58,167 bases of DNA from Macrostomum lignano (taxonomy: Eukaryota): assembly GCA_002269645.1 (NCBI GenBank), contig NIVC01000454.1, forward strand, positions 1 to 58,167, written 5' to 3'. Positions 23,179 to 47,324 of this stretch are shown here, in pieces; the first letter of the stretch is position 1; each line of letters begins with the position of its first letter. Made by a program: the position numbers and the translations under genes. The notes beneath the pieces were generated by a model. That model had not been told where the DNA came from and did not search any database. It saw only the letters and a program-made list of their open reading frames with translations.

Positions 23179-23246
23179 GTGGGCAAGTGATTTATTCAGA
23201 CATTGGATGGCTTCAGATTTGGGGATAGTGGGATCTTTGATAGTAG

Positions 23247-23446
23247 TGTAGGCTGGCTTGTTGGTGCGCGTGCACTTAGATGTGCACGTCTGGCTGTTTT
23301 GGGGGATGGCGTTTAGAGCTGCAGCGTGTGCGTGCTTGGGGTGGTTACACCCACCCCAACTTTGGTATATTAAATATATTGGCGTGAGCCAGTGAGGTCT
23401 CCTCACGTGTTGTGTTCGTCACTGCAATTCAACCCACGGTCTTACA
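23247..23446 (+). repeat. 5' LTR (200 bp)
   Basis: TGTAGG...CTTACA; identical by eye to 28004-28203. Confidence 0.95.
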
Positions 23447-23447
23447 C

Positions 23448-23460
23448 TGGTGGCAGCGGT
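23448..23460 (+). other. Primer-binding site TGGTGGCAGCGGT (tRNA-Leu 3' end)
   Basis: 13-nt complement of ACCGCUGCCACCA, the recalled 3' end of metazoan tRNA-Leu (AAG type); 1 nt after the LTR. Confidence 0.85.
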
Positions 23461-23466
23461 CTCAGT

Positions 23467-24261
23467 ATGGCCAAATCAGAGCAAGCCAGTTTATTGCCTC
23501 CAAAGTTCAGCGGCGACTCCAACGTGAGAATGTGGCTAAGCACGTTTGAAGACTTCGCCGACGACTGTGAATGGGACGACAAGAAGAAGGCAAAGAAGCT
23601 GAGACTGCTGGTGACAGGAGAAGCGCAAATCTTCGTCTGGGAGCAGCCGGCAGACGTGTCAGCCAGCTATGAAAGGCTGAAGGAGAAGCTGATCGAGTGC
23701 TTCGGCAACAGTCTGAGCTGCTACAGAGCAATGGAGGATTTTGTAGAGCGAAAGCGACAGCCCAACGAGTCGCTGAGGGAGCTCGCCTACAGCCTGAAGC
23801 TTCTCCACCTTCGGGCCCGCCCGGACGACTCCGTGGCGGCTCGGGAAAAGGACGTGAAGTTTCGCCTGATGCGCCTCCTGCCATCTGCCGTGAGAGATGC
23901 GCTGTTGAAGGACCAGGACGCGGACTCGTGTTCGCTGGCCGCCATCGTCGACAGAGCTGCGCAGCTTGAGCTGGTGAGCCACGCAACTACAGCCTCATCA
24001 GCCGCGGTGTCGGTAGAAGACAGACGGCTGAGCCAGCTGGAGCAGCAGATGCAGCAGCTGACAGCCAGCGTGCGAACGGGACAACCCGGAAGAGACAGGC
24101 GTCAGAAGGGACCCAGTAAGTGCTTCAGCTGCGGCGAGCCAGGTCACATCGCTAGGCGGTGCCCAAAGGCGATCGGCAGTCGCTGCAGCCGGTGCTCAGG
24201 CAAGGGTCACTCCGCCGCGGTGTGCCCGACACCAACTGGTCAGCCGCAGGGAAACTTCTGA
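23467..24261 (+). CDS. gag: Gag (264 aa) with two CCHC zinc knuckles
   Basis: PPKFSG N-terminal motif; CFSCGEPGHIARRC and CSRCSGKGHSAAVC. Confidence 0.92.
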   Translation: MAKSEQASLLPPKFSGDSNVRMWLSTFEDFADDCEWDDKKKAKKLRLLVTGEAQIFVWEQPADVSASYERLKEKLIECFGNSLSCYRAMEDFVERKRQPNESLRELAYSLKLLHLRARPDDSVAAREKDVKFRLMRLLPSAVRDALLKDQDADSCSLAAIVDRAAQLELVSHATTASSAAVSVEDRRLSQLEQQMQQLTASVRTGQPGRDRRQKGPSKCFSCGEPGHIARRCPKAIGSRCSRCSGKGHSAAVCPTPTGQPQGNF

Positions 24262-27200
24262 GGGTCGGCAGCCTGGGGCCAGCACCGACCCGCTCAAAAG
24301 GGGCCCTCAGATCAGCGCCTTCAGTCTTCGTGAAGGTGCACTTTGGCAGCGTGTCAGCGCCTGCTCTGCTCGACACCGGCGCGCAAGTTTCGTTGATGGA
24401 CAAGTCGCTGTTCGACAGACTGCAGTGCAAGATCGACTCCACCGACATCGGTGCGCTGCCGACGGCCGTCGACGGATCCCGGCTGCGCTGCCTTGGCGGC
24501 CTGTCAGCAGCGGATGTTTCGATCGGCCAGACCATCCGCGTGTGCCATCGCTTCACAGTCGTGGACGGCATCCAGCCCAGCCTGATCATCGGCATGGACT
24601 TCATCGGCGAGGTGTCGCAGGCGATGACCATTGACATTAAAGAAGGCGTCGTCAGGTTCGACAGCACAGCTGTGCCTTTCAGCAGCGAGCCGGCTAGAGC
24701 AGACTGTTGCCTGGTGCCGAGTGTCCTGGTGGCGCGGGTGGCGGCAACTACGGAGTTGCCCGCCCGCAGCGAGAAGCTGGTGTGGCTCAAGGTGGATTCC
24801 AGCGGCGAGCAGGGAGTCTTTGAGCCGTCTGAGGACTTCGTGAAGTCCACTGCCGTCCTGCCGGCCCGCGTGCTGGCGGTCTCGGACGACTGCCGCATCC
24901 CGGTGAAAATGTGCAACCTGGCAGAGGAGCCCGTGCTGCTGTACGCCAACAAGGCGGTTGGCACGTTCGAAGGCGCGATGACAGACGGGGACGGTCGCCA
25001 GGAGGCGGCCCAGGAGAACCCTGTCGGTTGGAACATAAACGCGGAGCTGCCCGAACCGGATGCTGCGAGGCTGCGACAGCTACTGGAGAGCAACGAGGAC
25101 CTGTTCGCCAGGCACGAGTACGACCTGGGCACGACGGCGTTGCTGCAGCACCAGATCGAGCTGGAGCCGGGAGCGCGGCCACACCGGCAGGTCCAGCGCC
25201 GGCTGCCGCTGTCTGTGCGAGAACAGGTGGACAAGAAGATCGGCCAGATGCTGGAAAGCGGCATCATCGAGCCGTCGACATCACCATGGGCCAGCAACCT
25301 GCTGGTGGTCCGCAAGAAGAACGGCGACATCAGACTGTGCACGGACTGGCGGCAGCTCAACGCCTGCACGGTCAAGGATGCGTACCCGCTGCCGCACCTG
25401 CAGCAGGCCATGGATGCGCTTGTCGGATGCTCCTGGTTCTCCACCATCGACTGCCGGCAGGGCTACCACCAGGTGGAGGTGGCGGAGGAGGACCGGTACA
25501 AGACGGCTTTCTATTCGACGCGCGGCCTGATGCAATTCTGCAAGATGGGCTTCGGGATGTGCAATGCCCCGGCGACGTTCCAGCGGCTCATGGAGCTGGT
25601 GATGTCCGGCCTGTCCTGGGAGTCCGTGCTGACTTATATCGACGACATCATTGTCTTCAGCAGGACGTTCGACGAGCACTTAGAGAGGCTGGCGGAAGTT
25701 TTTAAGCGGTTGCGAGACGCGGGACTCAAGCTGCACAAGGCCAAGAGCGCGTTCGGCCATCGCCGGGTGCTGTACCTGGGACACCTGATCAGCGAGCAGG
25801 GCATTGCCCCGGATCCCGGCAAGGTCGATGCCATTCGCAGCATGCCCAGCCCAACGACGACCGAGGAGGTGAAGCGGTTTCTTGGAATGCTGGGGTTCTA
25901 CCGTCGGTTCATCCCAGGCTTCAGCCAGACGGCGAGGGTCCTGCACGACGTCAGCGTGAAATCGAGGGACTTCGCGTGGAGCAGCGACTGCGAGCGAGCG
26001 TTCCGCGAGTTGAAGGACCGGCTGACGATGGCTCCGGTGCTGAGGCTGCCGGATTTTACCAAGCAGTTCGTGCTCAGCTGCGACAGCAGTCAGTTCGCCG
26101 TCGGCGCGGTGCTCAGCCAGCTGCACGGTGACGCCGAGCTGCCTGTGGCGTTCGCCTCTCGCACCCTCAACAAGGCCGAGCGCAACTACTCGGCGACCGA
26201 CCGCGAGCTGCTGGCGCTGGTCTGGAGTCTGAAGCACTTCAGGACGTACCTGCTGAGTGTCTCGAGCTTCAGAGTCTACTCGGACCACCGGCCACTGCAA
26301 GGTCTGCTGACAACGAAGGACCCGAAGGTCGGCTGGCGCGATGGCTTTCTACGCTGCAGCAGTTTTCGTTCGAGCTGCTGTACCGGCCTGGCAGGGACAA
26401 CGTCGTGCCGGATGCGCTGAGCCGGGTGGCCGGCACGCGCCTGCAGCCTCGGTGGGACGACAGCCGCCTGCACGAGGAGCAACTGCAAGACCCGCTGCTG
26501 AGCAAGGCGTTCCAGGCACTGACCGAAGGGATTGACAGCCTGTCCGATTCGTGGGCGGCGCAGGTTCGCGAGCTGCTGGACGAGGCCTCGGTGAGCTCGG
26601 CGGGTGTCCTGCTGGTGGGTGGCCGGCCAGTTATTCCCGGTCACCTGCGGCCGCATTTTCTGCAGCAGGCGCACTCGTGCGACCAGAGCGGACACCTCGG
26701 CGTCGACAGGACCGGAGCGAGATTGTCTGAGCGCTGCTGGTGGCCTGGTCTGCGACGGGACGTCGAGAACTGGGTGGCCAGCTGCGCGGTCTGCCTGGCC
26801 AAGAAGTGTCCAACCAAGCCGCAGAAGGCGCCGCTACAGTCGACGTGCCAGCCGACGGCTCCGTGGCAGCTGGTGCAGATCGACATCAAAGGGCCGCTTC
26901 CGCGTACGACTGATGGCAAGGCGTACATCCTGAGCATGTGCGACGCCTTTTCCAAGTGGATGGAGACGGCAGCCCTGGCGGCGATCGACGCGGTGACGGT
27001 GGCGGATGCACTGCTCAAGTCGGTGGTTCTGCGTCACGGCGCTCCTCAGGTGCTGCACAGTGACCAGGGACGGCAATTCGAGAGCGAGGTGTTCGGCCGG
27101 CTCTGCGAGCAGCTGGGCGTTGAAAAGACGCGCACGTCGCCGTTTCATCCGAGTGGCAACGGAATCGTCGAGCGAGGCAACCGGACGCTCGGCGATATGC

Positions 27201-27967
27201 TGGCGACGACGGTGGCCGAGAACCAGCAGGATTGGGACAGCAAGCTGCCGTATGTGACCTGGGCCTACAACACCTCCGTGCACAGCACCACCGGCCTCAG
27301 TCCGTACCAGGTCCTCCACGGCTGGCCACCGAGGCTGGATCTCGACAGCTGGCTGATAAGCGGCGACCGGCCGGCAGCCGACGGTGGACATCACGGCTTT
27401 CTGCAGCGGACTCAGGAGAACCTGCAGAGCGCTTTCGACACGGTGCACGGCCGACTGCGGAGCGCCCAGGTCGAGCGCAACCGGCTGGCCAACCAGGACT
27501 CTCGGTTCGTGCCGTTCGAAGAGGGCCAGCTCGTGATGCTGCGCAACTCCGTCGTCAAGCGCGGCCAGACGCGGTGCCTGAGCGCCAAGTGGAAGGGGCC
27601 GTACCGAGTCCTGAGGCGCCTGGGCGAGGTCAATTACCGCATCCAGGACGAGACCGGCCGCAGGCGCCGGCTGGTGGTGCACCACGACCGCCTCAAGCGC
27701 TTCGTGCAGCGACGGGCGTCACTGGAGCTTCCGGCCGCGGCAGACCACCAGCCGCCGGCCGCGGACTCCGACAACGACGGCACCGCCGCTGAGCCGCCCG
27801 GGCAGGCGGCCGATCCTGACGGCGACACGGTGACCTTCTGGCCCGAGCTGCAGGCAGACGAGGCACCCGAGGAGCAGCCGGCGGCACCGGCTGAGCCGGT
27901 AACGGTTCCGCGGCGGTCGGCGAGAGAGCGGCGGCCACCTGACTTGTACATGGCGGGCTTTGCTTGA
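24249..27967 (+). CDS. pol: Pol (protease, RT, RNase H, integrase), entered by -1 frameshift; 1-nt break at ~26327
   Basis: LLDTGA protease, YIDD RT, and RNase H ..GRLARW..YRPG..N..PDALSR after the frame switch. Integrase has an HHCC zinc finger, the DDE triad (IDIKGP, HSDQG, VERGN) and WKGPY. Confidence 0.95.
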
Positions 27968-27990
27968 CTCTGGAACTGTCTTTTGTTTCT

Positions 27991-28003
27991 AGGGGGAAAG
28001 TAG
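27991..28003 (+). other. Polypurine tract AGGGGGAAAGTAG
   Basis: Purine run abutting the 3' LTR. Confidence 0.85.
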
Positions 28004-28203
28004 TGTAGGCTGGCTTGTTGGTGCGCGTGCACTTAGATGTGCACGTCTGGCTGTTTTGGGGGATGGCGTTTAGAGCTGCAGCGTGTGCGTGCTTGGGGTG
28101 GTTACACCCACCCCAACTTTGGTATATTAAATATATTGGCGTGAGCCAGTGAGGTCTCCTCACGTGTTGTGTTCGTCACTGCAATTCAACCCACGGTCTT
28201 ACA
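28004..28203 (+). repeat. 3' LTR (200 bp)
   Basis: Identical by eye to the 5' LTR. Confidence 0.95.
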
Positions 28204-28242
28204 GTAGGATTAGGGTTCGGTTTTAGGTTTGTGTTTCTATGC

Positions 28243-28535
28243 CAGAGGTCGGCACACTCCGGCCCGCCGGCCACATGCGGCCCGCAAAGCCTCTCTATCC
28301 GGCCCTCGGGTGCTTTGAATCTTCACAATAGCAATGCGGCCCGCTCAATGTTTGTGTCTCTTCTTAGCTCTCTTCTCTCACCTTTCTCTTCTCTCCTCTC
28401 CTTCATTCCTCTCTCCTCTCTCCTGTCCTCTCCTCTCTCCTCTCATCTCTTCTTTTCTCTCATCTCTTCTTTTCTCTCCTCTCCTCTCCTCTCTTCTCTT
28501 ATCTTCTCTCCTCTCCTCCTTATCTCTCTCCTCTC

Positions 28536-28567
<32 letters not shown>

Positions 28568-28833
28568 CTCTCTCCTCTCTCTCTCACTCTCTCTCTCCTC
28601 TCTCTCCTCTCCTCTCCTCTCTCCTCTCCTCTCCTCTCCTTCTCTTCTCATTCTCCTCTTTCCTCTCCTAGTTAATCTCTTCTCTCCTCTCGCCATCTCT
28701 CGTCACTTATTCTCTCGCCTCTTTTTTCTTATATTTCTCTTTTCTATTCCTCTCCTCTCTCCCCTCCTCTGGCCTGCAGTCATGCGCTGGGTCCTCTATT
28801 TTGCTCTGGAGGTAAAACGTTTGCCGATCCCTG
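28243..28833. mobile_element. Non-autonomous hAT (Charlie-like) MITE with internal CT-rich microsatellite
   Basis: TIRs CAGAGGTCGGCACAC and GTTTGCCGATCCCTG (12/15), subterminal CGGCCC motifs, and 8-bp flanks TTCTATGC / TGCTATAC (6/8). CT-rich tract at 28367-28770. Confidence 0.75.
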
Positions 28834-29025
28834 TGCTATACCAACGGAATTTTAACTGCCTTCATGGGATGCAACTAAATGTTGGGATTTGAAAATTTTC
28901 AGCTGTTTTGTTATTCCAATAAAATTAAAATCCCTCGGGCAAAGCACGTGATCGACTCAAATCAATTTAGATCCCTTAGTAATAGTTTCGAGCTACTCGC
29001 ATTGCAACTTGCAATTCGCCCTCAG

Positions 29026-29266
29026 GACAATTCGAGACGTTGACGTGGAGCAGATCGCCAAGCACTGCCGCGACCTGCGCCAGCTGGACATCCTGGGCTC
29101 CAACCAGGTGTCACTGGAAGCTGTACAGTTCGTGCTGCGCAGCTGCCCGAAACTGGAGATGTTCGATGTCAGCTTCTGCGGCCAGATTAAGCGTGCCAGT
29201 GTCGAATGCCTCAAGGCTGACTATCCGCACTGCTCTCTGCAGATGAGCTTTCAGAATCAGCAGTAG
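29026..29266 (+). CDS. FBXL4: FBXL4 exon 5 (last)
   Basis: CTCAG acceptor, phase-matched to exon 4. RTIRDVD..LRQLDILG..DVSFCGQI..MSFQ, ends in TAG. Confidence 0.92.
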
Positions 29267-31942: not shown

Positions 31943-33222
31943 TGAGAAGAGAATGCCAGTTTTGCCTAATTAAATATTTAAAATCAATTTATAAACCACA
32001 AGTCACTTTTTGCTATCGGTTTCTTTGGAATTATGTTGGGGAATTATACGTTTTGAATTTTGGCACCAATTTAAATTTAATATTACGAGTAGTTTAATTA
32101 TTATCGCAACTACTATATATGCGTTGACAAGTTTATTGTTTTCGTTACAATATTATTAATACAGCTTTTTACAGTCAGTTTGAGCTTAGTAGCGGTTGAC
32201 TAAATCCAGAGTGGCAGAACTCTACACACAGACAACTGCTGCCCCTAGTCCATGGCCTGAAGTTTGACTGGTGAGCAAAGACTGCATTAACTTGGTCCAT
32301 TTTCATCCTTTTGAACATCGGATTTCACTCTTATTATCGTAAACCAATGCAGTAAAACGAATGCAAACGAATAAAATAAGATGGAACTCAGGAAAAGAAC
32401 AGTACCATCTGAACAATAAGCATGAGAAGTTCATATTACGAACCACAAGCTGTAAATGTTCAGATTAACAGCTTCAATCATGATCTATTTCTATATCTAT
32501 TTCTATAATGCCGGAACACGTAAAACATGTTAAACTCCTGAAAATTTCCAAGAAACGTACTTTCCCACCCTTCTATTTGCTTGGATTTATTCTTTACATA
32601 GCGCTTAATGGGGATTTGACATAGACAATTCCGGTAGCAGTCGGGGCCAGTAGCAGTTAATAAAAAAATTAATAAACTTGTGATTGCAGCTCGGACCAAA
32701 TGCTTGCTTCATTTGCAATCAGAAGGCCTGGAAGGTACAGAGCCAAGTGAGCAAAGTGGCCCATTAGCATTTATAATTATGAATGCGTAGACTTAGTCAA
32801 CACGAGAAGACTTAAGCAATTCGTAGCACAGAGCATCGTTGAGAATTTTTATCGGGCAGAAGCAACGAGTCATGAGCTGTGAGTTGAGCAGTTTTTATCC
32901 GAAGCGGCTCTGCCCAAAAGCAAGCATCAGACAGCTCAAGTACAAGCAGAAGATGGGGCAGAGAGAGAGGCGAGAGTGCAGGAGTGAATGAAGACAGAGG
33001 CTGGCAACTGTTTGCACAGCCAGGCTGCATGGTCTCTGCCATTGTGCGCCTGACTCCCTGTGAGCGGCACAAACACACAGCAGCCAGTCTCAGTGGAGCG
33101 GCTATCAATTTCTGCTTATATTATACAACTGCAATCCGACATTTTCCTGGTTCTTCTGCGTGTGAATAGGTGAAGAACTGCTCAATCACAACTCAAGCAG
33201 GCCTAATACCCCATTGCCGCAA

Positions 33223-33369
33223 ATGGAGGAGCTAACGGAAGAGCAAATAGCCGAGTTTATGGAGGCATTCAGTATATTCGACAAGGAGGACAAGGGCTAC
33301 ATAATGGTGGATGATCTGCTCACTATGATCGGCTCGCTGGGACAGAATCCCACTAAAGAGGAGATTGCG
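33223..33369 (+). CDS. Calmodulin-like protein exon 1
   Basis: [37 protein letters not shown]. Donor GTGAGA 33370. Not in the ORF track (too short). Confidence 0.9.
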
Positions 33370-33409
33370 GTGAGAGGGCTGGGATGAGTTTTTATGGTTT
33401 TTGACTATA

Positions 33410-33960
33410 GACTGACTTTGGTGACCCCAGACTCAGGCTGTGACGGGTGACCATAGAATCAGGCAGTGACTGGGGTGACCATAGACTCAGGCAGTGACTG
33501 GGGTGACCGTTAGACTCAGGCAGTGACTGGGGTGACCATAGACTCAGGCAGTGACTGGGGTGACCGTTAGACTCAGGCAGTGACTGGGGTGACCGTTAGA
33601 CTCAGGCAGTGACTGGGGTGACCATAGACCCAGGCGGTGACTGGGGTGACCATAGACTCAGGCAGTGACTGGGGTGACCATAGACTCAGGCAGTGACTGG
33701 GGTGACCATAGACTCAGGCAGTGACTGGGGTGACCCTAGACTCAGGCAGTGACTGGGGTGACCATAGACTCAGGCGTGACTGGGGTGACCATAGACTCAG
33801 GCAGTGACTGGGGTGACCATAGACTCAGGCAGTGACTGGGGTGACCATAGACTCAGGCAGTGACTGGGGTGACCATAGACTCAGGCGGTGACTGGGGTGA
33901 CCATAGACTCAGGCAGTGACTGGGGTGACCATAGACTCAGGCGGTGACTGAGGTGATTAG
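33410..33960. repeat. 28-bp minisatellite (GTGACTGGGGTGACCATAGACTCAGGCA)
   Basis: About 19 units in the calmodulin-like intron. Confidence 0.95.
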
Positions 33961-34206
33961 ACCAATACATTTACTGGGATGAATAAAAATAGTTTTGCCC
34001 TCCGTTTTTTAACTCAGAAAAATGAGTCCCGATGATAATACTACGCTTTACCATATCCGAGATGCTGTAAAGGTGACGATGCATACAAAGGGTGTGAATG
34101 AGCAAAGCGCGATAAACCACCATAGAAGTGGCGATAGGAGTGAAAATCAGAGATCCTGCAACTCGATCTGTAGTCCTCTGGCCAAAGGCTTCAGCTCTTC
34201 GCATCC

Positions 34207-34663
34207 TCACACGAGAGTCTCTGGGGTGTCGAAGACATCGCAAGGAGCTCGCCAACCCGACACTGACGGCGCTGGCCGCTTCCGAGGCGTCTGATTCGGT
34301 GTGGGCAGCAGCTTCTGGCTCAGGCACCGGTAGGCGCAGCTCTTCGCAGAGTCCTTCTGACCGCCGCAGTCGCCCCCGCCGGTAGGACGGCAGGCCTTCA
34401 GGATGGCGCCGTGCCAGCAGCGGACGAGCAGCAGCAGGGCGGCGGCGCACTCGAAGAGGCCGATGACGGACACGCCCAGGTACAGTCCCATCAGGCCGCC
34501 GATGTCGGACAGGAACTGCGACAGCGGGTACTCGGCCTCCTCCACAACGAGATCGCCTTTGTCTTTGGCCGCCATCACAAAGAGGTTGCTGATGCTCAGG
34601 CGGCCTTTGCGCACAATGTCGACGAGGGTCTCGGATTCCGAGGTGCTCAGTGGATGGGGAGGA
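34207..34663 (-). CDS. DEG/ENaC (ASIC-like) channel exon 3 (TM2 and C-tail)
   Basis: YPLSQFLSDIGGLMGLYLGVSVIGLFE is the TM2 with a GxS filter; ends ETLV*. Acceptor CCCGCAG at 34670-34664. Confidence 0.88.
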
Positions 34664-34737
34664 CTGCGGGATGGGACGCGGGCATGCATGGGTGCAGCAT
34701 TGGGAATTGAAGACAGCTTTAAGGAACCAAAACTCAC

Positions 34738-34905
34738 AATTCTTTCAGGATACTCCTTAGGAAGGCCTCCCTTGCCTGATTGGCAGTCTCTGCCCACATC
34801 TCCCTGTACTGCTCCCGGTGGCTCTGGAGTTGCCAGGACAGCGAGTGGCAGGGAGGTCTCCTTAGGTCGGCGCACTCGCGACGCAGCAACGGTCGAAAGT
34901 TTTTC
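34738..34905 (-). CDS. DEG/ENaC channel exon 2
   Basis: CTGCAG acceptor (34911-34906) and GTGAGT donor (34737). Encodes ECADLRRPPC..W; phases match exons 1 and 3 (total 1776 nt, ~591 aa). Confidence 0.75.
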
Positions 34906-35232
34906 CTGCAGTGGTTCGACGGTTGGGTAGCTGATCTTGACGCAATTGAGTCAGATGGCTCGTCTATTCGCATCAAGGACATCAGCAATGGTAGCTCCGA
35001 AAAGCTGCCGTCTGAATTTAACCTTCGGGATGCTTTGAAAAAGTTCAAGAACTCGTCTCAAATCTTCTGTCAATCTTAAAATGTTTCAAGCAGCAGTCTT
35101 GACATCACCCTCAAAGACTAAAAACTCTTAAAAACTCTCTCGCACTTCAGTTTGACCTTAAATTAGAGATGCAGAAATATTCATAGTCGTCACTCCAGGG
35201 AAACCTTGCTGATAAGCACTCTCTCCACTCAC

Positions 35233-36383
35233 TCAAGCCGGTAGGTCGCAGCGGTGTGGTTCAGGCAGATCAAGTTGTCCAGCAGCCCGGACTCCTTGAA
35301 CTTGCTCCAGTCCAGACACAGCACTGGCGGTCGGTCGTCCAGCTTGGGCACAATCAGGTTCGGATTGAAGCAGCCGCAGGATCTGTAGAAAATTGTCTGC
35401 GACAACAGCTGGTGGCAGTGGAAGTAGCTCAGGTTGTAGCGGCGCGCGTGCCGCAGGTCGTAGTTGAAGACCTCGGCGGTTTTCTCCGCCTTGCGGCAGT
35501 CGCTCTTGACCGGATCGGACAGACGCCGTTTCTGGTCGAGCGCAACCGTGGTGGCCACTCCGGGTGGCGTCTCCAGCATCCTGCCGGACTCGGGCAGCGT
35601 GTTCGGCGCGTGGATGAACACCCGGCCGCCGAACTGGTAGTTGGACGAGTTGAAGTGCCAGTAGGTGAGAAAGTTGCCCCGGATGAAGAACTGCACAGCG
35701 TCGATGGCGCCGAGCTGCTTGGAGTTGATGAAGCTGTTCAGCTTCAATGTGTAGCACGAGCAGCGATACCGCATGGACATCGTGTTGCTTAAGAAGGAGC
35801 TGAGAATTTCATCCTCGCTGAACGCTTGCCAGCCGGAGTCCATGTTGATCTCGCTCTGGATGCCTTTGTTAGGCAGCCGGTAGCCGACACCTACCAGCAC
35901 TTGTCTGGGGTCGTTCACCTGGAACACGGAGCTATTGATGCTGGCGAGTGCGATGGACCGGATGAGCACCGCTAGGACGCCCTCCTGTTCGACGTTTTTA
36001 TCGAAAAAGAACGTCTCCATGAGCCGGCTGGCGGTGACCACGGCGCTGTCATTCTGCAGCTTCCGAATCCAGTAGCTGAAGTTGCTGCGCGCCTCCTCGG
36101 AGCGAAGGCTCACGGGCGAGTTGTCGCAGAATGTGATATCGGGCCAGACGAACGAGTCCTCGTTTGAGTAGTGCGCCGTGAGCACGGGGAAGCTGTTGTA
36201 GCGAGCCACCACGGATATCAGGTTGCCGACAAATGAGCACAGGCCGAGCAGCACTAGCGACAGCCAGAAGATCTGCTCAGCTCGGCTGGCCGCGGAGGCC
36301 GCATGCGAGATGCCGTGCACAGTGGAGCGGCTGAGCAGCTGCAGCAGCTGAGCTCGCAATGGCCTTTGCTGCAGGTCTGGCAT
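35233..36383 (-). CDS. DEG/ENaC channel exon 1 (TM1 and ectodomain)
   Basis: STVHGISH (HG motif), TM1 FWLSLVLLGL, WPDITFCDNSP, CYTL, Cys-rich C..LLSQT..Y..CGC. Donor GTGAGT at 35232. Confidence 0.92.
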
Positions 36384-37167
36384 TGAACCTCTGGCCCGAT
36401 CTCTCTGCCCTTTCTGTTCACGGATCCGTCGCTAAAAAAACTAAAAAAATGACAGATCGTCGACGTCTTTATAGCCAAACCAGGATCAAATCGAATCGGG
36501 CCTCACCCTACAGATACTGCTGCCGGATTGCATATGCCGGTGGGTCTGGTTATGCGTAATTTCGATCAAGTAAAATGTCACAGTACCGTTTCTTGCGAGC
36601 GCGCTCAGTGTCTCCGCAAGCATTCCAGTCTATGCAGTGCATTTTCCAAGAGACTCTATCTTTGCAATTTCGCTTTTATTCAATCAAGCGCAAAAAGTTT
36701 TCATTTTTTTACTGAGCGAGTCAGGGGTAGCGAATTCCAGAAGCACCGCGCGCACGACCCCGACTGAACCAGGTGCGACAGAGCCTTTGAGGGCTGTCTG
36801 CAGGTTCTTGCGTTTTCGAACAATTTTCCTGCACGGATCTGGCAGTCGCGGCCAGCCACTTTTGTGGCAATTCAATGAGAATAAACTGTCCTTAAGGTTT
36901 ATCGAGAGGTTAAGCAGAAGGTCCGCGGTTAGTACACTGCTTGTGTCATCCCTCTCGGCAGCCGTTGTTAAGCACACAACCTGTGATGTTTTACGGCGTC
37001 ACCCGGCCTCCTTGTAGCAGGACCGGCGTGTGTTTCACCTGCCACGCCTGTCATCCAGCTGCATATGAGCTACATCTACAAGCGGAAAAGAGACACGCAA
37101 TTTTTATTCTAAGTATACTACTGATCAACCCCAATAAGAAAGTAGTTTTCGCACATCCTTCCCGCAG

Positions 37168-37479
37168 TCCCTCATTGGCGGCACCGGCAGCGACTTCGGC
37201 GAGGACACCATCGACTTTCCCCGCTTCCTGGAAGTGATGGTGGTGAAAATGCGCCGGCGCGACTCCGAGGAGATGCTGAAGCAGGCGTTCAGCGTGTTCG
37301 ACAGCGAGGGCCAGGGCTGGGTGAGCACCGATGAGCTGCGTCACGTGATGAAAGTTCTCAGCGAGAAGATGACGGACGAGGAGGTCGAGGAGATGATCAG
37401 GCAGGCTGACCAGGACGGCGACGGCTCCGTCAATTACGAGGAGTTCTGCCGGCTCATGGCCGGGAGCAAGGACGACTGA
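37168..37479 (+). CDS. Calmodulin-like protein exon 2 (total 152 aa)
   Basis: CCGCAG acceptor; [54 protein letters not shown]. Confidence 0.93.
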
Positions 37480-37488
37480 TGGAGTTTT

Positions 37489-37994
37489 AGCCATGGAGTT
37501 TTAAGCTTAGAGTTTGGAAATGGAAACTCTATGGCCAGTTATATTTTTAATATACGACGTAAAACCTACCTCGTAGAAAAAAGGACCACTTAAGTATCGA
37601 AATGTGAAGTCTGGAACAGACGGTTTCCAAACCAGGAGTTCTCAGACCTAGAGTCTGGAACAGACGGTTTCCAAACCAGGAGTTCTCAGACCTAGAGTCT
37701 GGAACAGACGGTTTCCAAACCAGGAGTTCTCAGACCTAGAGTCTGGAACAGAACGGTTTCCAAACCAGGAGTTCTCAGACCTAGAGTCTGGAACAGAACG
37801 GTTTCCAAACCAGGAGTTCTCAGACCTAGAGTCTGGAACAGAACGGTTTCCAAACCAGGAGTTCTCAGACCTAGAGTCTGGAACAGAAGAAAAGAAAAAG
37901 AAGCTGCGACCTGGGCCGTCAAAGTTTCAGAGCATGAGATTCAGTTGCTCATCTGTTTCCAATCCAGATTCTACCAGCCTAAAACTCCATGGCT
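37489..37994. mobile_element. Possible MITE: ~40-bp inverted arms enclosing a tandem array
   Basis: AGCCATGGAGTTTTA.. at 37489 and ..TAAAACTCCATGGCT at 37980-37994 are a perfect 15-nt inverted pair, extending imperfectly to ~40 nt. Confidence 0.45.
37608..37886. repeat. 44/45-bp minisatellite (GTCTGGAACAGACGGTTTCCAAACCAGGAGTTCTCAGACCTAGA)
   Basis: About 6 units. Confidence 0.93.
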
Positions 37995-38546
37995 GTACTG
38001 ATAGCTATCCAGAGCGCTTGACTGGTGTTAATAACTGTAATATATTAATTCGAAATAACTGCGCGAAAAATTGAACAATAGAGCAGCGATCTCTCTTCAA
38101 TTATCAGAGACTCCTCAGACACTCAGGCAGCAGCCATTAGCCTTAATTTTTCTATGTAAAGCTGCATGGGGCCAGAGGGAACGGCTGCCTTCAAAGTGAT
38201 CGACTGCATCGCTCGTTCACCTCGGATCGCAGCTCAAGCCCAGCGCTCCGGGCCTCACAGCCTCATTGTGTTTTCACCCCTCCCCATCTATGCATTCTCA
38301 ACCAGCAGCTCACGGCGGTTGTCAAAGCAACAGAGAGAAAATGGGAACAGGGCAGAGAGCCTCCCACCTCTCCCCTGCACAGGATCCATTTCCCGCTGAG
38401 CACACAACCCAAAACGCCCGGGACCTTTTTCCGGCTGCCTCAGTAGCAGCGCCAATTCCTTTTGTTTCCCCAGTAACTGAGGAAGCGAGCCGTTCAAAGC
38501 ATTCTGTAAGCAGCTTTGCCCCCCCCCCCCCCCCGGGCTGAGCTGA

Positions 38547-39254
38547 ATGCTCCGGAGGCTGGAGCAGCTTATAAAAACAAAGCCGAGACTCTGGGAGGAA
38601 ATCAGAGCAACACTGCCAAGGCACAGTTGGATACCGCAGCCTGTTGTCATGGCAACATCAGTGTCCAGCGCAACCGGTCGCAGGCTGGGCCCGCCGCCGC
38701 CGCAGCCGCCGACGACGACAAGCGCTGCTTCATCTGGCGGCGACCGGCGGCACCGATCGAAGTCTCCGGCCTCCTCGGGCTCCGCCCCAGCCGCCGCCAA
38801 GGCGAAGCAGCCGAGCCTCGCCACGCTGATGATGCTGAAGCGGCGCATCGGCGACCTGCGCGCCCGGCACCGCCGGAACCGGCCGGTGCGCCGGCAGGAG
38901 AACAGCTACCGGCTGGGCCCGGAGCCCGCCGCCAGGTACCCGGCCGCCGAGGTGCGCCGCATCGCCGAGAACAGCCTGAAGTTCTTCCTGGCCGAGTCGC
39001 GCTACGACGCAAAGGCGACGCCCAAGCTGGCCAAGATGGTCACCGAGGACGTGAAGCGCCGGATGAAGAGCAACTTCAGCTGCCCGCGCTACAAGATCGT
39101 TGTCATGGTGACGGTGACGCAGCGGGAGCAGCAGCACCTCATGATGGCGTCGAGAACTGCGGGCGACTCGGAGCTGGACGACTTCGTCACCTGCACGCTG
39201 GAGAGGCCGAGCTTTCTGGCCTCGGCGGCCGTGTTCTGGTTCTACTGCGAGTGA
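38547..39254 (+). CDS. Tctex1-domain dynein light chain (TCTEX1D/DYNLT-like), single exon; start may be 38649
   Basis: ENSYRLGP...L....YD....KL.K.V.E.VK.R.K....PRYKIVV.V......MASR...D..D.F.......FWFY.E is the Tctex-1 signature. Confidence 0.9.
   Translation: MLRRLEQLIKTKPRLWEEIRATLPRHSWIPQPVVMATSVSSATGRRLGPPPPQPPTTTSAASSGGDRRHRSKSPASSGSAPAAAKAKQPSLATLMMLKRRIGDLRARHRRNRPVRRQENSYRLGPEPAARYPAAEVRRIAENSLKFFLAESRYDAKATPKLAKMVTEDVKRRMKSNFSCPRYKIVVMVTVTQREQQHLMMASRTAGDSELDDFVTCTLERPSFLASAAVFWFYCE
38643..38656. promoter_or_regulatory. X-box-like motif GTTGTCATGGCAAC
   Basis: 13/14 match to GTTGCCATGGCAAC, at the 5' end of a ciliary-type gene. Confidence 0.45.
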
Positions 39255-40697
39255 CCGAGTCACGTGACGGCTGGGCCGCAAGGTCACCTGACGCGACCTC
39301 CGCTGAACGATTTACTGCCGTAATTTGCTTGGATAGAAAACACCGTAAACGTTAAACTGATGAACTGAGGTGACAATGTTTTCTATAATACTTTGGTCCC
39401 CTGAATAGCAAGTGTTTTGCTCCTGAGCAATTCAAAATCCTGAGCTCGCCCTCCCCACCTGACCATTGATAGAAGAGAGAGGACAAAGCACCCTTCAACT
39501 CTATTTAGTTTTTTTTAAAATACAATTAAAAGAAGTTAAAATATGCTTATAAAGTTGGCATCTGATTGATTTGAGATTATAAGCGATGAAGCCATCTCGG
39601 ACACGCTGGCATAAAATGAACTTCGGAACTGTAGGTAAGAATTTGCTTACGTTGGGCTGAAAAGCTTAATAATTTATATCTTTCTAAGACGTTTTGAAGC
39701 CAAATTATAATATTAATACTTGCAGGAGGGTTGCAGGCACCCTGACACAAGCAGCGTTCTCCGCTCAGCTGCTCTGTCCTCTTATTTCGGCCTTCAAATA
39801 AATTGTCCCAATACTCAGTGATCGTTCAAAAGCGCTTCTGTTCGCCTTAGCCTACAAGACAGCAACCCCAGCCTCGGCCTGCTCGCGCCTGTAAGCAGAA
39901 GGCATGAATGAGCCTGACACGCTGGAGTATCGATACAGTACAGTCGCGGTGAATCATCCAGGGTCGCGTCTTAAGAGCGAGCAGTGAGGTTTCTTTTGGC
40001 TCCTCTCCCCCTTTATTAAGTTGAGTCGTATTTCGTGTGCTCTCCGCTCTTCTGCCTACAGCGATCTGCTGCCGTACCTGTACTTCCAAGAGTTACCAAC
40101 TAACTGGCAAAATTAATGCAGCGAGAAAATCAATGAGATTGAAATCGAACAGTTTGCGCACGAACAAAAAAGCTGCACTTCTACAAACAACCGTTCTACC
40201 CCTAAAGGGGGGCAAATCGGCTAGTCTAATTTACTAAAAAGCGCAAGATATCACTAGACCTCTTTCTGATCATAAGAAGTGCATCGATCGCACTCGGAGC
40301 CATTTCGGCAGTTTTTTTCAGACCGAACTTAACGCTATATACGCGTATTTAACCCAAGAGAGAAATTTTGCAGAGAGCCAAGAGAATCAAACCATACAAA
40401 ATTGAGTTCAAAGTTATGTGTGACGAAAAAAGAAAGCCATTGGTCGCTGGCTGTGGGCTGTTATATCTTATCTTTGGGACTCGTCCCACCCCAATGACCA
40501 CCGCTGCTCCGTCGCTATGATTATGATTTACCTGCACCCCTGAGCTTCGAACTCAAGCCGCAGTTATTTTAGTGCAACAAGTGGCCCCCCGTCAAGCCAA
40601 CGAAAATTCAGCTGTTCAGCAAACACACATCGCAGCCTTGAGAGTCTTTATTTATTAGCTCGGTTGGCCGCTCAGTCCGTTGCTGCGCCATCCAACC

Positions 40698-41492
40698 ATG
40701 GGACTCAAAATCAGCGGCCAGCTGCTGGCCCTCCTCGGATTCATCCTGGTCTGCCTCACCGCCACCTTTGTCATCACTGCTCTGCTGCCCACACTCGTGC
40801 CCCGGGAGCGCACCTGCCCTGATCACGACGTGAAGCTCGACCAGCTGCTGCTCACTGCGCCTTCGGGCAAGCGGCTGAAAGTGCAGCTGAACCTCAACAA
40901 CACGGCCAAGAGGTCCGGCAAGTACTTCCACTGCGGCGACAGCTCGGCCGCCTATGTCAGGCAGAACGCCGACCCCGCGGCGAACGCCTCCTGCCGGCTG
41001 TTCGAGTGGCGGCTCACCCAGTCGGTCAAGGAGGTCACGGACTGTTTCGACATGAGCGGCGAGTTCTGGTTCGGCGGCGCCGAGATGTGGCGCCAGGACT
41101 GGCCGCTCAACACAGGTGAGCAGGTGCGGACAGCCTACGTGCCCAGCGACGTCTACCTGCGACAGTTCGGCGGGGCAATCGAGCGATTCTGGATCTCCAC
41201 GGGTGGCTTCGCTGTGTTCGTTGAGGACTCGGTGCCGCTGTACGTCAGCATCTCCGGCGGCAGGCTCTGCCTCAGCGGAAGCCGCAGCGCTGAAGTCTAC
41301 GGCAATCTAGCGGCGAGAAATCCGGGAGACCCGCTGCTCGCCTACTCCGTCTGCTCGGGCGCCGACATCAAGTCGCTCTACCGGGCCACCCAGTTCTGGC
41401 GGGGACCCAGCGAAACGCCAGAAAGGGACCTGTTTGAGAGGCCTGTCTGGTCCACCTGGGCCTACCTGAAGGCCGGCATCACCCAGGAGTCT
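40698..41492 (+). CDS. MYORG: MYORG-like GH31 glycosidase exon 1 (4 exons, ~667 aa; type II membrane anchor)
   Basis: N-terminal TM; WFGGAE...Q.WP..ERFWIS.GG..PVWSTW. Donor GTGAGT 41493. The four exons sum to 2004 nt, in frame. Confidence 0.88.
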
Positions 41493-41530
41493 GTGAGTTG
41501 CGGTGCCGCTTGATGCTGGCTCTGATGCTC

Positions 41531-41684
41531 GATCTCAATCTCAATGCCCCTTTCCCGGTGACCTCATCTCAATGCCCCTTTCCCGATGACCTCATCTCAA
41601 TGCCCCCTTCCCGGTGACCTCATCTCAATGCCCCTTTCCCGGTGACCTCATCTCATTGCCCCTTTCCCAGTGACCTCATCTCAA
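41531..41684. repeat. 28-bp minisatellite (AATGCCCCTTTCCCGGTGACCTCATCTC), MYORG intron 1
   Basis: About 5 units. Confidence 0.9.
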
Positions 41685-41793
41685 ACCCTTTCTCGCTGAC
41701 CCCAATCTTCATGACCCAAAATTGTGACTGGAGTACATAGCAACTCGGTAGCAACTGAAAAACCAGCGGCCCAGCCCGCCCCTCGAATCCCAG

Positions 41794-42155
41794 GTGCTGG
41801 AGTTCGCGCACAACATCAGCGCCAATGCTTTGCCGGCCTCCCAGCTCGGAGTCGACGACAAATGGACGGTGAACTACGGCGACCACGTGTTCGACACAGC
41901 CCGGTTTCCCGACCCGGCCGCCATGGTCAAGGGGGTGCACGACCAGGGCTACAACCTGACGCTCTGGGTGCACCCGTTTGTCAACAAAGACTCGGAGGCG
42001 TTCGCCACGGGAGCCCAAGTGACCAGGAGGAACGGCAGCTTCCTGCTCACCTCAAGGACGCGGCTGGACGAGCCCGCCTTCACCAGCTGGTGGCGCGGGG
42101 CGAACCTCAGCGCGGCCATGGTGGACATCACGGATGTGGAGGGTGAAGGGTCAAA
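41794..42155 (+). CDS. MYORG: MYORG-like exon 2
   Basis: VDDKW..YGD..FD..RFP..TLWVHPFVN..WWRG. Phase-2 donor GTGAGT 42156. Confidence 0.88.
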
Positions 42156-42377
42156 GTGAGTGGCGCAGGCAGGCTTTGAAGGCATTCAGAAAGGAGCTGG
42201 AAGATCCTGCACAGGACATCAAAACCTACAAGACACCCGAAACTACCATAAGACACCGAAACCTATCATACGACACCAGAAACTACGAGTACTATGGGGT
42301 TATTATATTCTCTCAATAGAGAGGAGCGAAATTCCACCAGTCGATCAGTATCCATCGCTGAATCCCGGACACTACAG

Positions 42378-42870
42378 GTACCTGATGCAGGAGCTCCAAC
42401 GCCTCAAGACGGACTTCGGCGTGGACTCCTTCAAGCTGGATGCCGGCGAGTTCAACTGGCTGCCCGAGAACTCCCGCCTTCGCGGTTTCGACAACCGCAG
42501 CAACCCCGGCTGGTACGCGAACGCCTGGGCCGACTTCGGCATCCGCCTCGACCCCCTGCGGCGCCGCCAGGAGGTCCGCGTCGGCTTCCGCGCCCAGCAC
42601 CTGCCGCTGACTGTCCGCGCCATCGACAAGGACTCGCACTGGGGCCTGGACAACGGACTTAAAGCCATGGTCACCTCCGCCCTGCTGCACTGCCTCATCG
42701 GCTACAATTTTCATCTACCCGACATGGTGGGCGGCAACGCCTACTGCGAGGGACCGGACGGCCTGGACGGGAACTGCTATCCGGACAGGGAGCTGTACAT
42801 CCGCTGGCTGCAGGCAACTGTACTCATGCCATCACTGCAGCTGTCTGTGCCGCCATGGCACTACGATGAG
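42378..42870 (+). CDS. MYORG: MYORG-like exon 3 (catalytic residues)
   Basis: KLDAGE (nucleophile Asp) and RAIDKDSHW (acid/base Asp) are intact; also PDMVGGNAY and ELYIRWLQ. Confidence 0.92.
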
Positions 42871-42879
42871 GTCAGTGGG

Positions 42880-43150
42880 GGATTGCTAATCTAGCCAATC
42901 AGTGAGGAGCTGGAACAGAATGGATTGCTAATCTTGCCAATCAGGGATGAGCTGGGACAGAATGGATTGCTAATCTTGCCAATCAGGGATGAGCTGGAAC
43001 AGAATGGATTGCTAATCTAGCCAATCAGGGATGAGCTGGAACAGAATGGATTGCTAATCTAGCCAATCAGGGATGAGCTGGAACAGAATGGATTGCTAAT
43101 CTAGCCAATCAGGGATGAGCTGGAACAGAATGGATTGCTAATCTAGCTAA
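42880..43150. repeat. 42-bp minisatellite (CCAATCAGGGATGAGCTGGAACAGAATGGATTGCTAATCTAG), MYORG intron 3
   Basis: About 6 units filling the intron. Confidence 0.93.
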
Positions 43151-43166
43151 TCTACCTAACCCGCAG

Positions 43167-43520
43167 GAGGTGGTGAACATCTCCAGGCGTCTGCTGGCCA
43201 TCCGCAGTGAGCCCCGCTTCCGCGAGAACATGAAGTCGGCTCTGGCTGACCTTCTGGCCAACGGCGACCCCCTGCTGCGTCCGATGTGGTGGCTGAAGGA
43301 CGGCCGGCCGGGCAGCGCCGACCAGTTCCTGCTGGGCCGTTCGATCTTAGCGGCCCCGGTGCTGGAGCCCGGCGCAAAATCCCGCAAGGTGCACTTCCCC
43401 AGCGGCCGGTGGAGGCCCTGGTTCGCGCCCGAGGACGGGTCTCAGGACATTGCCGGGCCGCAAGAGAAAGACGTGACGATGCCACTCGACTCGGTGGCAG
43501 CCTTCTGGCTGGTTGAGTGA
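43167..43520 (+). CDS. MYORG: MYORG-like exon 4 (last)
   Basis: GDPLLRPMWW...DQFLLG..IL.APVL..G..SR.V.FP.G.W is the GH31 C-terminal motif; ends in TGA. Confidence 0.92.
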   Translation, partial: EVVNISRRLLAIRSEPRFRENMKSALADLLANGDPLLRPMWWLKDGRPGSADQFLLGRSILAAPVLEPGAKSRKVHFPSGRWRPWFAPEDGSQDIAGPQEKDVTMPLDSVAAFWLVE

Positions 43521-44900
43521 CATCAAGAGTGACAGTGGGAGTGACAACGGGATGGCATTGGGAGTGACAATGGGGATGACTGTGGGAGTGACAATAGGGA
43601 TGACTGTGAGAGGGACAATAGGGATGACTGTGAGAGGGACAATAGGGATGACTGTGAGAGGGACAATAGGGATGACAGTGGGAATGACAATAGGGATGAC
43701 AGTGGGAGTGACAATAGGGATGACAGTGGGAATGACAATAGGGATGACAGTGGGAGTGACAATAGGGATGACTGTGAGAGGGACAATAGGGATGACAGTA
43801 GGAGTGACAATGGGGATGACAGTGGGAGTGACAATAGGGATGACTGTGAGAGGACAATAGGGATGACAGTGAGAGTGACAATAGGGATGACAGTGGGAGT
43901 GACAATAGGATGACAGTAGGAGTGACAATGGGATGACAGTGGGAGTGACAATAGGGATGACAGTGAAAGTGACAATAGGGATGACAGTGGGAGTGACAAT
44001 AGGGATGACAGTGGGAGTGACAATGGGGATGACAGTGCGAGTGACAATAGGGATGACAGTGCGAGTGACAATAGGGATGACAGTGGGAGTGACAATGGGA
44101 TGACAGTGGGAGTGACAATAGGGATGACAGTGAGAGTGACAATAGGGATGACAGTGGGAGTGACAATAGGGATGACAGTGGGAGTGACAATAGGGATGAC
44201 AGTGGGAGTGACAATAGGGATGACAGTGAGAGTGACAATAGGGATGGCAGTGGGAGTGACAATAGGGATGACAGTGGGAGTGACAATAGGGATGACAGTG
44301 AGAGTGACAATAGGGATGACAGTGGGAGTGACAATAGGGATGACAGTGGGAGTGACAATAGGGATGACAGTGGGAGTGACAATAGGGATGACAGTGGGAG
44401 TGACAATAGGGATGACAGTGCGAGTGACAATAGGGATGACAGTGGTGACAATAGGGATGACAGTGGGAGTGACAATAGGGATGACAGTGGGAGTGACAAT
44501 GGGATGACTGAGAGGACAATGGGATGACAGTGGAGTGACAATGGGATGACAGTGGGAGTGACAATGGGATGACAGTGGAGTGACAATAGGGATGACAGTG
44601 GGAGTGACAATGGGACAATGACAGTGCACAGTGAGTGACAATAGGGATGACTGAGAGTGACAATGAGGGATGACAGTAGTGAGTGACAATGAGTGAGCAG
44701 TGACAATAGGATGGCAATAGGGAGTGACAATATGAGTAGTGACAATAGTGACAAGTGAGTGACAAGTGAGTGACAGTGGGAGTGACAATAGGGATGACAG
44801 TGGGTGAGACACAATTGACAGTGGGTGAGTGACAAGTGACAATTGACAGTGGGAGTGACAATTGACACTGGGAGTGCAATTGACACTGAGTGACAACCAA
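43515..44900. repeat. 24-bp minisatellite (GTGACAATAGGGATGACAGTGGGA)
   Basis: Begins at the MYORG stop codon; degenerates after ~44480. Confidence 0.95.
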
Positions 44901-45284
44901 TTGTGCTTGAGTGAAATTTGTAGGTAGATTTGAAGCGACAAATAGTAGTAACAGTGGGAGTAACGGAATGTCACTGAGGGGTGACCCGTGCACTTCCACT
45001 CAAGACAGTCAGTGGGATCTGCGCTTTACTGCCATCTCACACTGTGGCAATAAGGATTGCAATTTACAATTTCACTTTACTTGGACAAGTTTTGAGCTAA
45101 ATTTCATTGCACAGTTGTGAAATATTTCAGCACTGAGAATATCCGTTCAAATGCATGCATATTGCACATGAATCTGTGTCCGCAGATGATTACTGAATAC
45201 AGTAAGTAGTATGATCATTTTTACTATTTTTTCTAATACGATTTCAATTTATCTATTGTAGCTAGTAAAACTGAAAGTTAAAAT

Positions 45285-46742
45285 GGGAGTGACAATTGCA
45301 GACACTGTGACAATTGCAGACACTAGGAGTGACAATTGCAGACACTAGGAGTGACAACTGCAGACAGTGGGAGTGAAAATTGCAGACACTAGGAGTGACA
45401 ACTGCAGACAGTGGGAGTGAAAATTGCAGACACTGGGAGTGCCAATTGCATCAGACACTTGAGTGACAATTGCAACACTGGGAGTGACAATTGCAATCCC
45501 TGGAAGTGACAATTGCAGACACTGGGAGTGACAATTGCAACACTGGGAGTGACAATTGCAACACTGGGAGTGACAATTACATCAGACACTGGAGTGACAA
45601 TTACATCAGACACTGGAGTGACAATTGCAACACTGGGAGTGACAATTCCAACACTGGGAGTGACAATTACATCAGACACTGGAGTGACAATTCCAACACT
45701 GGGAGTGACAATTGCAATCCCTGGAAGTGACAATTGCAGACACTGGGAGTGACAATTACACCAGACACTGGAGTGACAATTGCAACAGACACTGGGAGTG
45801 ACAATTGCAACACTGGGAGTGACAATTGCATCAGACACTGGAGTGACAATTGCAACACTGGGAGTGACGATTCCAACACTGGGAGTGACAATTACATCAG
45901 ACACTGGAGTGACAATTCCAACACTGGGAGTGACAATTGCAACACTGGGAGTGACAATTGCAATCCCTGGAAGTGACAATTGCAGACACTGGGAGTGACA
46001 ATTGCAACACTGGGAGTGACAATTGCATCAGACACTGGAGTGACAATTGCAACACTGGGAGTGACGATTCCAACACTGGGAGTGACAATTACATCAGACA
46101 CTGGAGTGACAATTCCAACACTGGGAGTGACAATTGCAACACTGGGAGTGACAATTGCAATCCCTGGAAGTGACAATTGCAGACACTGGGAGTGACAATT
46201 GCAACACTGGGAGTGACAATTACATCAGACACTGGAGTGACAATTCCAACACTGGGAGTGACAATTCCAACACTGGGAGTGACAATTCCAACACTGGGAG
46301 TGACAATTACATCAGACACTGGAGTGACAATTCCAACACTGGGAGTGACAATTGCAATCCCTGGAAGTGACAATTGCAGACACTGGGAGTGACAATTACA
46401 CCAGACACTGGAGTGACAATTGCAACAGACACTGGGAGTGACAATTGCAACACTGGGAGTGACAATTGCATCAGACACTGGAGTGACAATTGCAACACTG
46501 GGAGTGACAATTCCAACACTGGGAGTGACAATTGCAACAGACACTGGGAGTGACAATTGCAACACTGGGAGTGACAATTGCATCAGACACTTGAGTGACA
46601 ATTGCAACACTGGGAGTGACAATTGCAGACACTGGGAGTGAAAATTGCAGACACTGGGAGTGACAATTGCAGACACTGGGAGTGAAAATTGCAGACACTG
46701 GGAGTGACAATTGCAGACACTGGGAGTGACAATTGCAGACAG
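45285..46742. repeat. ~21-26-bp composite minisatellite (GTGACAATTGCAACACTGGGA and variants)
   Basis: Variant units arranged in repeated multi-unit blocks. Confidence 0.95.
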
Positions 46743-47324
46743 AGGGAGTGAGGGAAAAGAGTGAAATTGGGACAATGAAGATGAATTGCAACTGAGCTTC
46801 AATTGACACGATTCATGATTTGTGTCCCCGTGATTTGATGTGAACAAAGAATTGTGTCACGGTGTGTGTCTAAACGCCAGCACTGCTAAATATTCAAATA
46901 CAGACTCGTCAATTACTCTAATTTTGTATTTTTCTGAAAATTGTAGCTTGCCGTCAGAATCTTTTTTTTGATTGACAATCTCCATTAATAGATTTGCTAT
47001 TTTTATCTCTCAAATTTCAAACTACGCAAAAAAAATTCTCGAGTTCAAATGCCATTGCAGTTACGTTTATTTTGAAAAAAATTGATTTTTGAATCTAAAA
47101 AAAACTTGAACAAAAGCAATCAAAGTTCAGCAGCGGATGGTTTTCATTTTTTATACAATCAGACAAAAATTATTTCCGAGTAATTAAAATATCTTTCCAC
47201 TTGTGTACAGGAGCCAATACTACTACAGAATTCTGAACAAGAAAAAGATAGAGTAAAAATGTGGATTGCTAGTCTATCGCTCTTGCTGTACCACTACTGG
47301 AGTCACAAAGGGGACTCAGAGGGA

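Follow-up and report, generated by a model that had tools for sequence, protein, structure and literature searches.

A predicted DEG/ENaC channel gene nested antisense within the only coding intron of a calmodulin-like gene in Macrostomum lignano

The locus described here lies at positions 33223-37479 of scaffold NIVC01000454.1 from the flatworm Macrostomum lignano (GCA_002269645.1, the Mlig_3_7 assembly described by Wudarski et al. 2017, PMC5730564), and the entire scaffold of 58,167 bp was analyzed as the window. On the plus strand, a calmodulin-like gene is encoded by two coding exons separated by one coding intron; on the minus strand, the complete coding sequence of a predicted DEG/ENaC channel gene (34207-36383) falls wholly inside that intron (33370-37167). 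Taking a nested pair to be one in which the coding sequence of the guest is contained within a single intron of the host, the two genes are nested at the level of their coding sequences. This antisense arrangement had been proposed in a first-pass annotation, every coordinate of which holds. The features of the locus are as follows.

33223-33369, plus strand: calmodulin-like coding exon 1 (Mlig017897.g1), 49 codons from the ATG, with a GTGAGA donor from 33370
33370-37167, plus strand: the only intron in the host coding sequence, 3,798 bp, phase 0, GTGAG...CAG
33413-33956, unstranded: minisatellite of 19.4 copies of a 28-bp unit, within the host intron, separating host exon 1 from the 3′ end of the guest
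34207-34663, minus strand: DEG/ENaC coding exon 3, encoding the segment before the second transmembrane helix (TM2), TM2 with the G-V-S filter motif, and a cytoplasmic tail ending in ETLV, then the stop codon
34664-34737, minus strand: DEG/ENaC intron 2, 74 bp, GTGAGT...CGCAG
34738-34905, minus strand: DEG/ENaC coding exon 2, 168 bp, with exon boundaries matching those of a paralog
34906-35232, minus strand: DEG/ENaC intron 1, 327 bp, GTGAGT...TGCAG
35233-36383, minus strand: DEG/ENaC coding exon 1, with the ATG at 36383, encoding the HG motif, the first transmembrane helix (TM1) and most of the extracellular domain
36384-37167, minus strand: presumed 5′ untranslated region and promoter of the guest, the 784 bp that separate its ATG from host exon 2, with consensus matches and a putative function
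37168-37479, plus strand: calmodulin-like coding exon 2, 103 codons and a stop, with an in-frame stop 10 codons upstream of the acceptor

The two host exons are joined in phase 0 to encode 152 amino acids (aa), as predicted in the first-pass annotation, and this product is identical to GenBank PAA82748.1 (BOX15_Mlig017897g1), whose gene spans 33223-37479 on this scaffold. It is also identical to A0A1I8HAE3 (UniRef100_A0A1I8HAE3), which is named 'Calmodulin' and represents three identical M. lignano entries. The GenBank annotation of Mlig_3_7 was built from StringTie/TACO/Trinity transcripts and TransDecoder open reading frames (ORFs) (PMC5730564); since PAA82748.1 is thus a transcript-derived model, the 33369/37168 junction carries transcript-level support, and splicing of the host intron is shown indirectly, through an RNA-seq-derived model. 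An earlier statement that host exon 1 is missed by annotation was incorrect: the full 152-aa protein is present in both GenBank and UniProt, and the unannotated gene at this locus is the guest. A literature text search for Mlig017897, together with a search of the supplement of PMC5816591, returned nothing.

The composition of the host protein was examined by alignment with calmodulin. Host residues 2-148 are collinear with calmodulin residues 3-148, with one 1-residue insertion (E about 1e-48), and the alignment crosses the exon junction with neither gap nor overlap. The two exons have diverged from calmodulin to an approximately equal extent (58% identity for exon 1, against residues 3-50, and 57% for exon 2). 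The acceptor preceding 37168 reads CCCGCAG (wider context, TTCCCGCAG), and the splice sites of both host and guest all fit the consensus for M. lignano, namely a GT[G/A]AG donor and a CAG acceptor (PMC8629364). Within exon 2, the first ATG occurs 23 codons into the exon, and the codons preceding it are still calmodulin-like, indicating that full translation of exon 2 requires exon 1. No other EF-hand-coding fragments were found across the 58-kb window.

Animal calmodulins are almost identical to one another. The host shares with calmodulin and with calmodulin-like proteins (CALML3-type and light-chain-like relatives) its length of 152 aa, compared to about 149 aa for calmodulin sensu stricto, its four collinear EF-hand units and about 57% identity; it departs from calmodulin itself in its strong divergence from a near-invariant sequence and in lacking a full set of four canonical 12-residue loops. 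Its best database match reaches 59% identity, and Pfam profiles identify the EF-hand_7 pair (PF13499, E=2e-26, in two stretches), with PF13405 and PF00036 also exceeding their cut-offs. Inspection of the loops showed that in EF1 ligand position 5 is occupied by Lys and position 12 by Asp, while in EF2 one residue is inserted and position 12 (-Z) is Arg; EF3 is semi-canonical and EF4 canonical. As judged from these residues, EF-hands 1 and 2 are degenerate and have lost canonical Ca2+ ligands, so that Ca2+ would be bound in the C-lobe only. With its N-lobe EF-hands degenerate, the label 'Ca2+ sensor', previously given to this gene, is only partly justified. Overall, the predicted protein is calmodulin-like and too diverged to be called calmodulin proper. 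The position of its intron differs from that in a calmodulin-like gene of the nemertean Tubulanus, where introns are located at 58/59 and 139/140 and an exon starts near residue 59, whereas exon 2 of the host starts at residue 50.

The guest begins with a 384-codon minus-strand ORF from the ATG at 36383, and its three exons (36383-35233, 34905-34738 and 34663-34207) are spliced into a product of exactly 591 aa, in agreement with the approximate length first assigned to it. The spliced protein matches the Pfam ASC family (PF00858) in one stretch covering profile positions 2-452 of 455 (E=1.3e-38, 133.7 bits against a cut-off of 23.6), a better match than is obtained with the separate exons. Hydropathy peaks at residues 38-60 and 497-522 correspond to two transmembrane segments, and the hallmarks of the DEG/ENaC family are all present: a large ectodomain rich in Cys between two transmembrane helices, an HG motif ahead of TM1 (TVHGISH), and the G/S-x-S motif in TM2 (LGVSV, where GxS is G-V-S). 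The protein ends in ETLV. When the guest is aligned with an M. lignano paralog (the channel part of A0A1I8GER8, 50% identity), the junction between exons 1 and 2 is confirmed; both junctions occur in the UniProt models A0A1I8HDB6 and A0A1I8JHV8, and exon 1 is 100% identical to parts of two M. lignano UniProt entries. Taken at the level of sequence, the guest is an intact gene for a DEG/ENaC subunit, a predicted cation channel.

Outside M. lignano, the guest is closest to DEG/ENaCs of the flatworms Echinostoma, Trichobilharzia and Schmidtea (25-35% identity). Named relatives include Echinostoma caproni A0A183A5V1 and Schmidtea mediterranea 'asic' (S5W2R2), as well as the channel part of M. lignano A0A1I8GER8; the guest resembles them in its full ASC domain, HG motif, two transmembrane segments and GxS motif, and differs by its identity of at most 25-35% to those outside M. 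lignano. Among solved structures, FaNaC (7yvb and 8on7) is nearest, but these PDB matches are weak and broken into pieces (E=1e-14). In oocytes, peptides elicited no response from three M. lignano channels placed near the FaNaC branch (PMC9234716), and the guest may or may not be one of the three.

Candidate signals flank the guest on its own strand. Consensus matches include TATAAA at 36473-36468, upstream of the ATG, and AGTAAA at 33975-33970, on the 3′ side. Ahead of its ATG, the guest frame stays open for a further 16 codons (36431-36384, minus strand), back to an acceptor-like sequence, TTTTTTTAG/CGACGG, which ends at 36432 (minus strand); the public models begin an exon at 36431. In M. 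lignano, the last three bases of the spliced leader are ATG (PMC8629364), and, speculatively, trans-splicing at TTTTTTTAG would add an in-frame start and a 17-residue N-terminal extension (M + RRIREQKGQRDRARGS).

In GenBank, three genes are annotated within 23223-47479, encoding an F-box/LRR protein, the calmodulin-like host and a GH31 glycosidase; each is a plus-strand gene, and the guest is absent from the annotation of this interval. UniProt holds the guest only within two very long minus-strand models, A0A1I8JHV8 and A0A1I8HDB6 (3,859 and 1,618 aa; window 15-42699, minus strand), which fuse guest exons with antisense translations. These models read antisense through host exon 2 (37334-37149), a neighboring ORF with a Tctex-1 domain and a retrotransposon, as well as GC-rich plus-strand genes and repeats, and A0A1I8JHV8 lacks nine guest residues (VKSDCRKAE), a conserved Cys among them. 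Both are clearly chimeras. The pipeline behind the GenBank annotation dropped the transcripts of the lower-expressed strand where read counts differed by at least 5-fold (PMC5730564), and this strand filter is a plausible explanation for the absence of the guest. If the filter did remove it, the host would be expressed well above the guest in whole animals.

To place the pairing in context, paralog loci were reached via a P450 gene that is fused to the channel paralog in UniProt; no P450 domain is present in the window. At the first of these loci (L007; NIVC01001845.1, 13636-22600), the paralog has the same three-exon architecture and the same intron positions as the guest, with introns of 4.8 and 2.6 kb, and is preceded on its own strand, at a distance of about 480 bp, by a cytochrome P450 gene (Mlig005784); the paralog is likewise unannotated in GenBank. 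No EF-hand sequence was found in the 23 kb fetched for this locus, and the second locus (L006), where a P450 gene again directly precedes the paralog, gave the same answer. Exons 2 and 3 of the L006 paralog were not found within 8.3 kb downstream, which may mean that this copy is truncated or that its intron is larger. The closest paralog thus has no calmodulin-like neighbor, suggesting that the pairing is specific to the locus studied here and is not a property of the channel lineage. Homology searches with both proteins returned no close orthologs of host or guest outside M. lignano, and the ENA metagenome contigs with calmodulin-like ORFs that were retrieved (two) contain ordinary calmodulin genes and no channel.

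Antisense is the commonest orientation for nested genes, whose hosts and guests are usually unrelated in function; examples include the Gart/pupal cuticle gene pair and human NF1 with OMG, EVI2A and EVI2B. In D. melanogaster, intronic genes make up about 6% of all genes, tim2/2mit being an antisense example (PMC3786989). The M. lignano locus resembles antisense nested genes of the tim2/2mit type in that a complete multi-exon guest occupies one intron of a host from an unrelated family; it differs in being a flatworm locus with a calmodulin-like host and a DEG/ENaC guest, known from coding sequences. The classic coupled pair is VAChT, nested in the first intron of ChAT, in which the two genes share orientation and promoter and are conserved together across animals. 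The M. lignano pair is like ChAT/VAChT in having a guest within a host intron and in that a functional link can be imagined. In contrast to ChAT/VAChT, its genes are on opposite strands, with no shared orientation or promoter, and conserved linkage was not found at the paralog loci L006 and L007, where the channel occurs without the association. The locus is a new instance of a well-known arrangement, and nothing beyond a typical nested pair is indicated.

These observations are probably explained by an ordinary host with a nested antisense guest, combined with an annotation gap; no sign of a joint function of the two genes was seen. Under this explanation, the host pre-mRNA would be transcribed across the 3.8-kb intron, which would then be spliced out, while the guest would form an independent transcription unit on the opposite strand, transcribed from within the intron. 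The guest promoter would most likely be located within the 784 bp that precede its ATG, with the 3′ end of the guest in the approximately 250 bp before the 28-bp minisatellite. The encoded DEG/ENaC subunit would belong to a flatworm-specific clade, whole-animal expression of the guest would be far below that of the host, and any interaction between host and guest would be limited to generic antisense transcriptional interference. A repeat search of 33900-37200 for transposon-like boundaries bracketing the guest yielded nothing meaningful, and an Rfam scan of the window at the gathering threshold gave no match.

Four points weigh against this explanation. First, the exact 591-aa guest protein is absent from a collection of 15 billion proteins and from the transcript-based annotation, so that the guest could be silent. 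Second, the sequence is compatible with co-regulation, to which host and guest may be subject. Third, GC content at third codon positions (GC3) differs between the host exons, at 0.65 in exon 1 and 0.90 in exon 2 (37168-37476; Fisher p=4e-4); GC3 in the guest is 0.78-0.85, and the GC content of flanking noncoding DNA is about 0.43-0.49. The gap between the host exons may reflect a 5′-end codon effect or separate exon histories. Fourth, the nesting is known here from M. lignano alone.

The first of these points leads to an alternative in which the guest is a silent or decaying copy and the locus amounts to a calmodulin-like gene with a long intron. Besides the missing annotation and the missing exact protein in any public set, this reading is favored by the fact that the sole public models containing the guest are ab initio chimeras. 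Opposed to it are an intact ORF of 591 codons across three exons with consensus splice sites, the full complement of family hallmarks with a full-length Pfam match, and the accumulation of 50% divergence from the paralog with zero stops or frameshifts. Moreover, the pipeline filters remove low-expressed antisense transcripts, and the neighboring Tctex-1 ORF is unannotated as well. A silent guest is consequently considered unlikely.

A second alternative is that host and guest constitute a functional unit, with exclusive or coordinated expression brought about by antisense interference, or with the calmodulin-like protein regulating the channel. Modulation of some DEG/ENaC channels by calmodulin has been reported. 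The nested antisense layout itself is real, and host transcription crosses the guest in antisense, so that some transcriptional interference is possible in principle; such interference between nested genes is documented in other systems (PMC3192792). On the other hand, the opposite strands mean that host and guest cannot share one transcript, the nearest paralog has an identical exon architecture without a calmodulin-like neighbor, EF1 and EF2 of the host are degenerate, and nested antisense pairs are frequent and mostly functionally unrelated. Given the paralog and the opposite strands, the co-regulation or mutually exclusive expression in sensory cells that had been envisaged for this pair stays conjectural, and a functional unit is regarded as very unlikely. 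A stronger version, namely a maintained macrostomid module in which antisense transcription gates expression of the channel, or in which the half-degenerate calmodulin-like protein acts as a Ca2+-dependent auxiliary channel subunit, would be a long shot.

The remaining alternative concerns the host and arises from a redundant contig of the same assembly, which is known to be redundant (PMC5730564). NIVC01001935.1 matches window positions 32849-47646 with 99.0-99.7% identity to about 44.4 kb and about 95% in the repeat arrays beyond, and it ends 374 bp upstream of host exon 1. Compared base by base over 32849-37888, it differs from the window in 18 alignment columns, nearly all of them 1-bp indels near the contig end, including three 1-bp deletions in host exon 1 (at 33237, 33331 and 33349). 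Because these deletions frameshift exon 1, the product annotated on that contig, and there only, is 80 aa long; the indel pattern fits long-read consensus error. That exon 1 is a relic and the functional product is this 80-aa C-lobe alone, translated from the internal ATG at 37237, is hardly credible: the 80-aa annotation, the lower GC3 of exon 1 and its degenerate EF1 would agree with it, but the 152-aa product is annotated on NIVC01000454.1 and present in UniProt in triplicate, the redundant contig departs from the window by 1-bp indels that gather near its end, clean substitutions being absent, as is typical of long-read consensus error, exon 1 is an intact ORF whose donor fits the consensus and which has diverged from calmodulin as far as exon 2 has, and the 23 exon-2 codons upstream of ATG 37237 have kept their likeness to calmodulin.

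Several other elements surround the nested pair. An intact single-exon ORF of 235 aa at 38547-39254 (plus strand) carries a Tctex-1 dynein light-chain domain at its C terminus (PF03645, E=1.6e-17); translation might instead begin at ATG 38650, giving a shorter product, a 15-nt poly-C run (38521-38535) lies just before the ORF, and the ORF is absent from the GenBank annotation. It is located 1.07 kb downstream of the calmodulin-like stop codon on the same strand, and both genes encode light-chain-type proteins. A minisatellite of 6.3 copies of a 45-bp unit is located at 37608-37888, just 3′ of the calmodulin-like gene. The operon criterion applied to M. lignano is a spacing of 1 kb (PMC8629364); when the 281-bp minisatellite is subtracted, the spacing falls below 1 kb, so that the calmodulin-like gene and the Tctex-1 ORF might belong to one transcriptional unit. 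Minisatellite arrays are abundant on the scaffold, with staggered self-match ladders at about 43.5-44.9 kb, 45.3-46.8 kb and 47.4-49.0 kb. Upstream, positions 23392-27967 (plus strand) contain the coding region of a Ty3/Gypsy-type long terminal repeat retrotransposon, whose two long ORFs encode a zinc-knuckle gag, aspartyl protease, reverse transcriptase, RNase H and integrase; the element falls inside the interval annotated as the F-box/LRR gene (from at or before 23223 to 29266, plus strand), apparently as a nested element in an intron with the same orientation.

The practical value of these results is the correction of annotation, covering one unannotated DEG/ENaC gene and two chimeric UniProt entries, and they expose a systematic risk, in that pipelines keeping only the higher-expressed strand will lose nested antisense genes. 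For M. lignano itself, the gene set gains an intact and so far unannotated DEG/ENaC gene, an addition of modest biological weight. With the transgenesis and RNA interference available in this flatworm, the calmodulin-like host and its antisense guest could serve as a test case for transcriptional interference.

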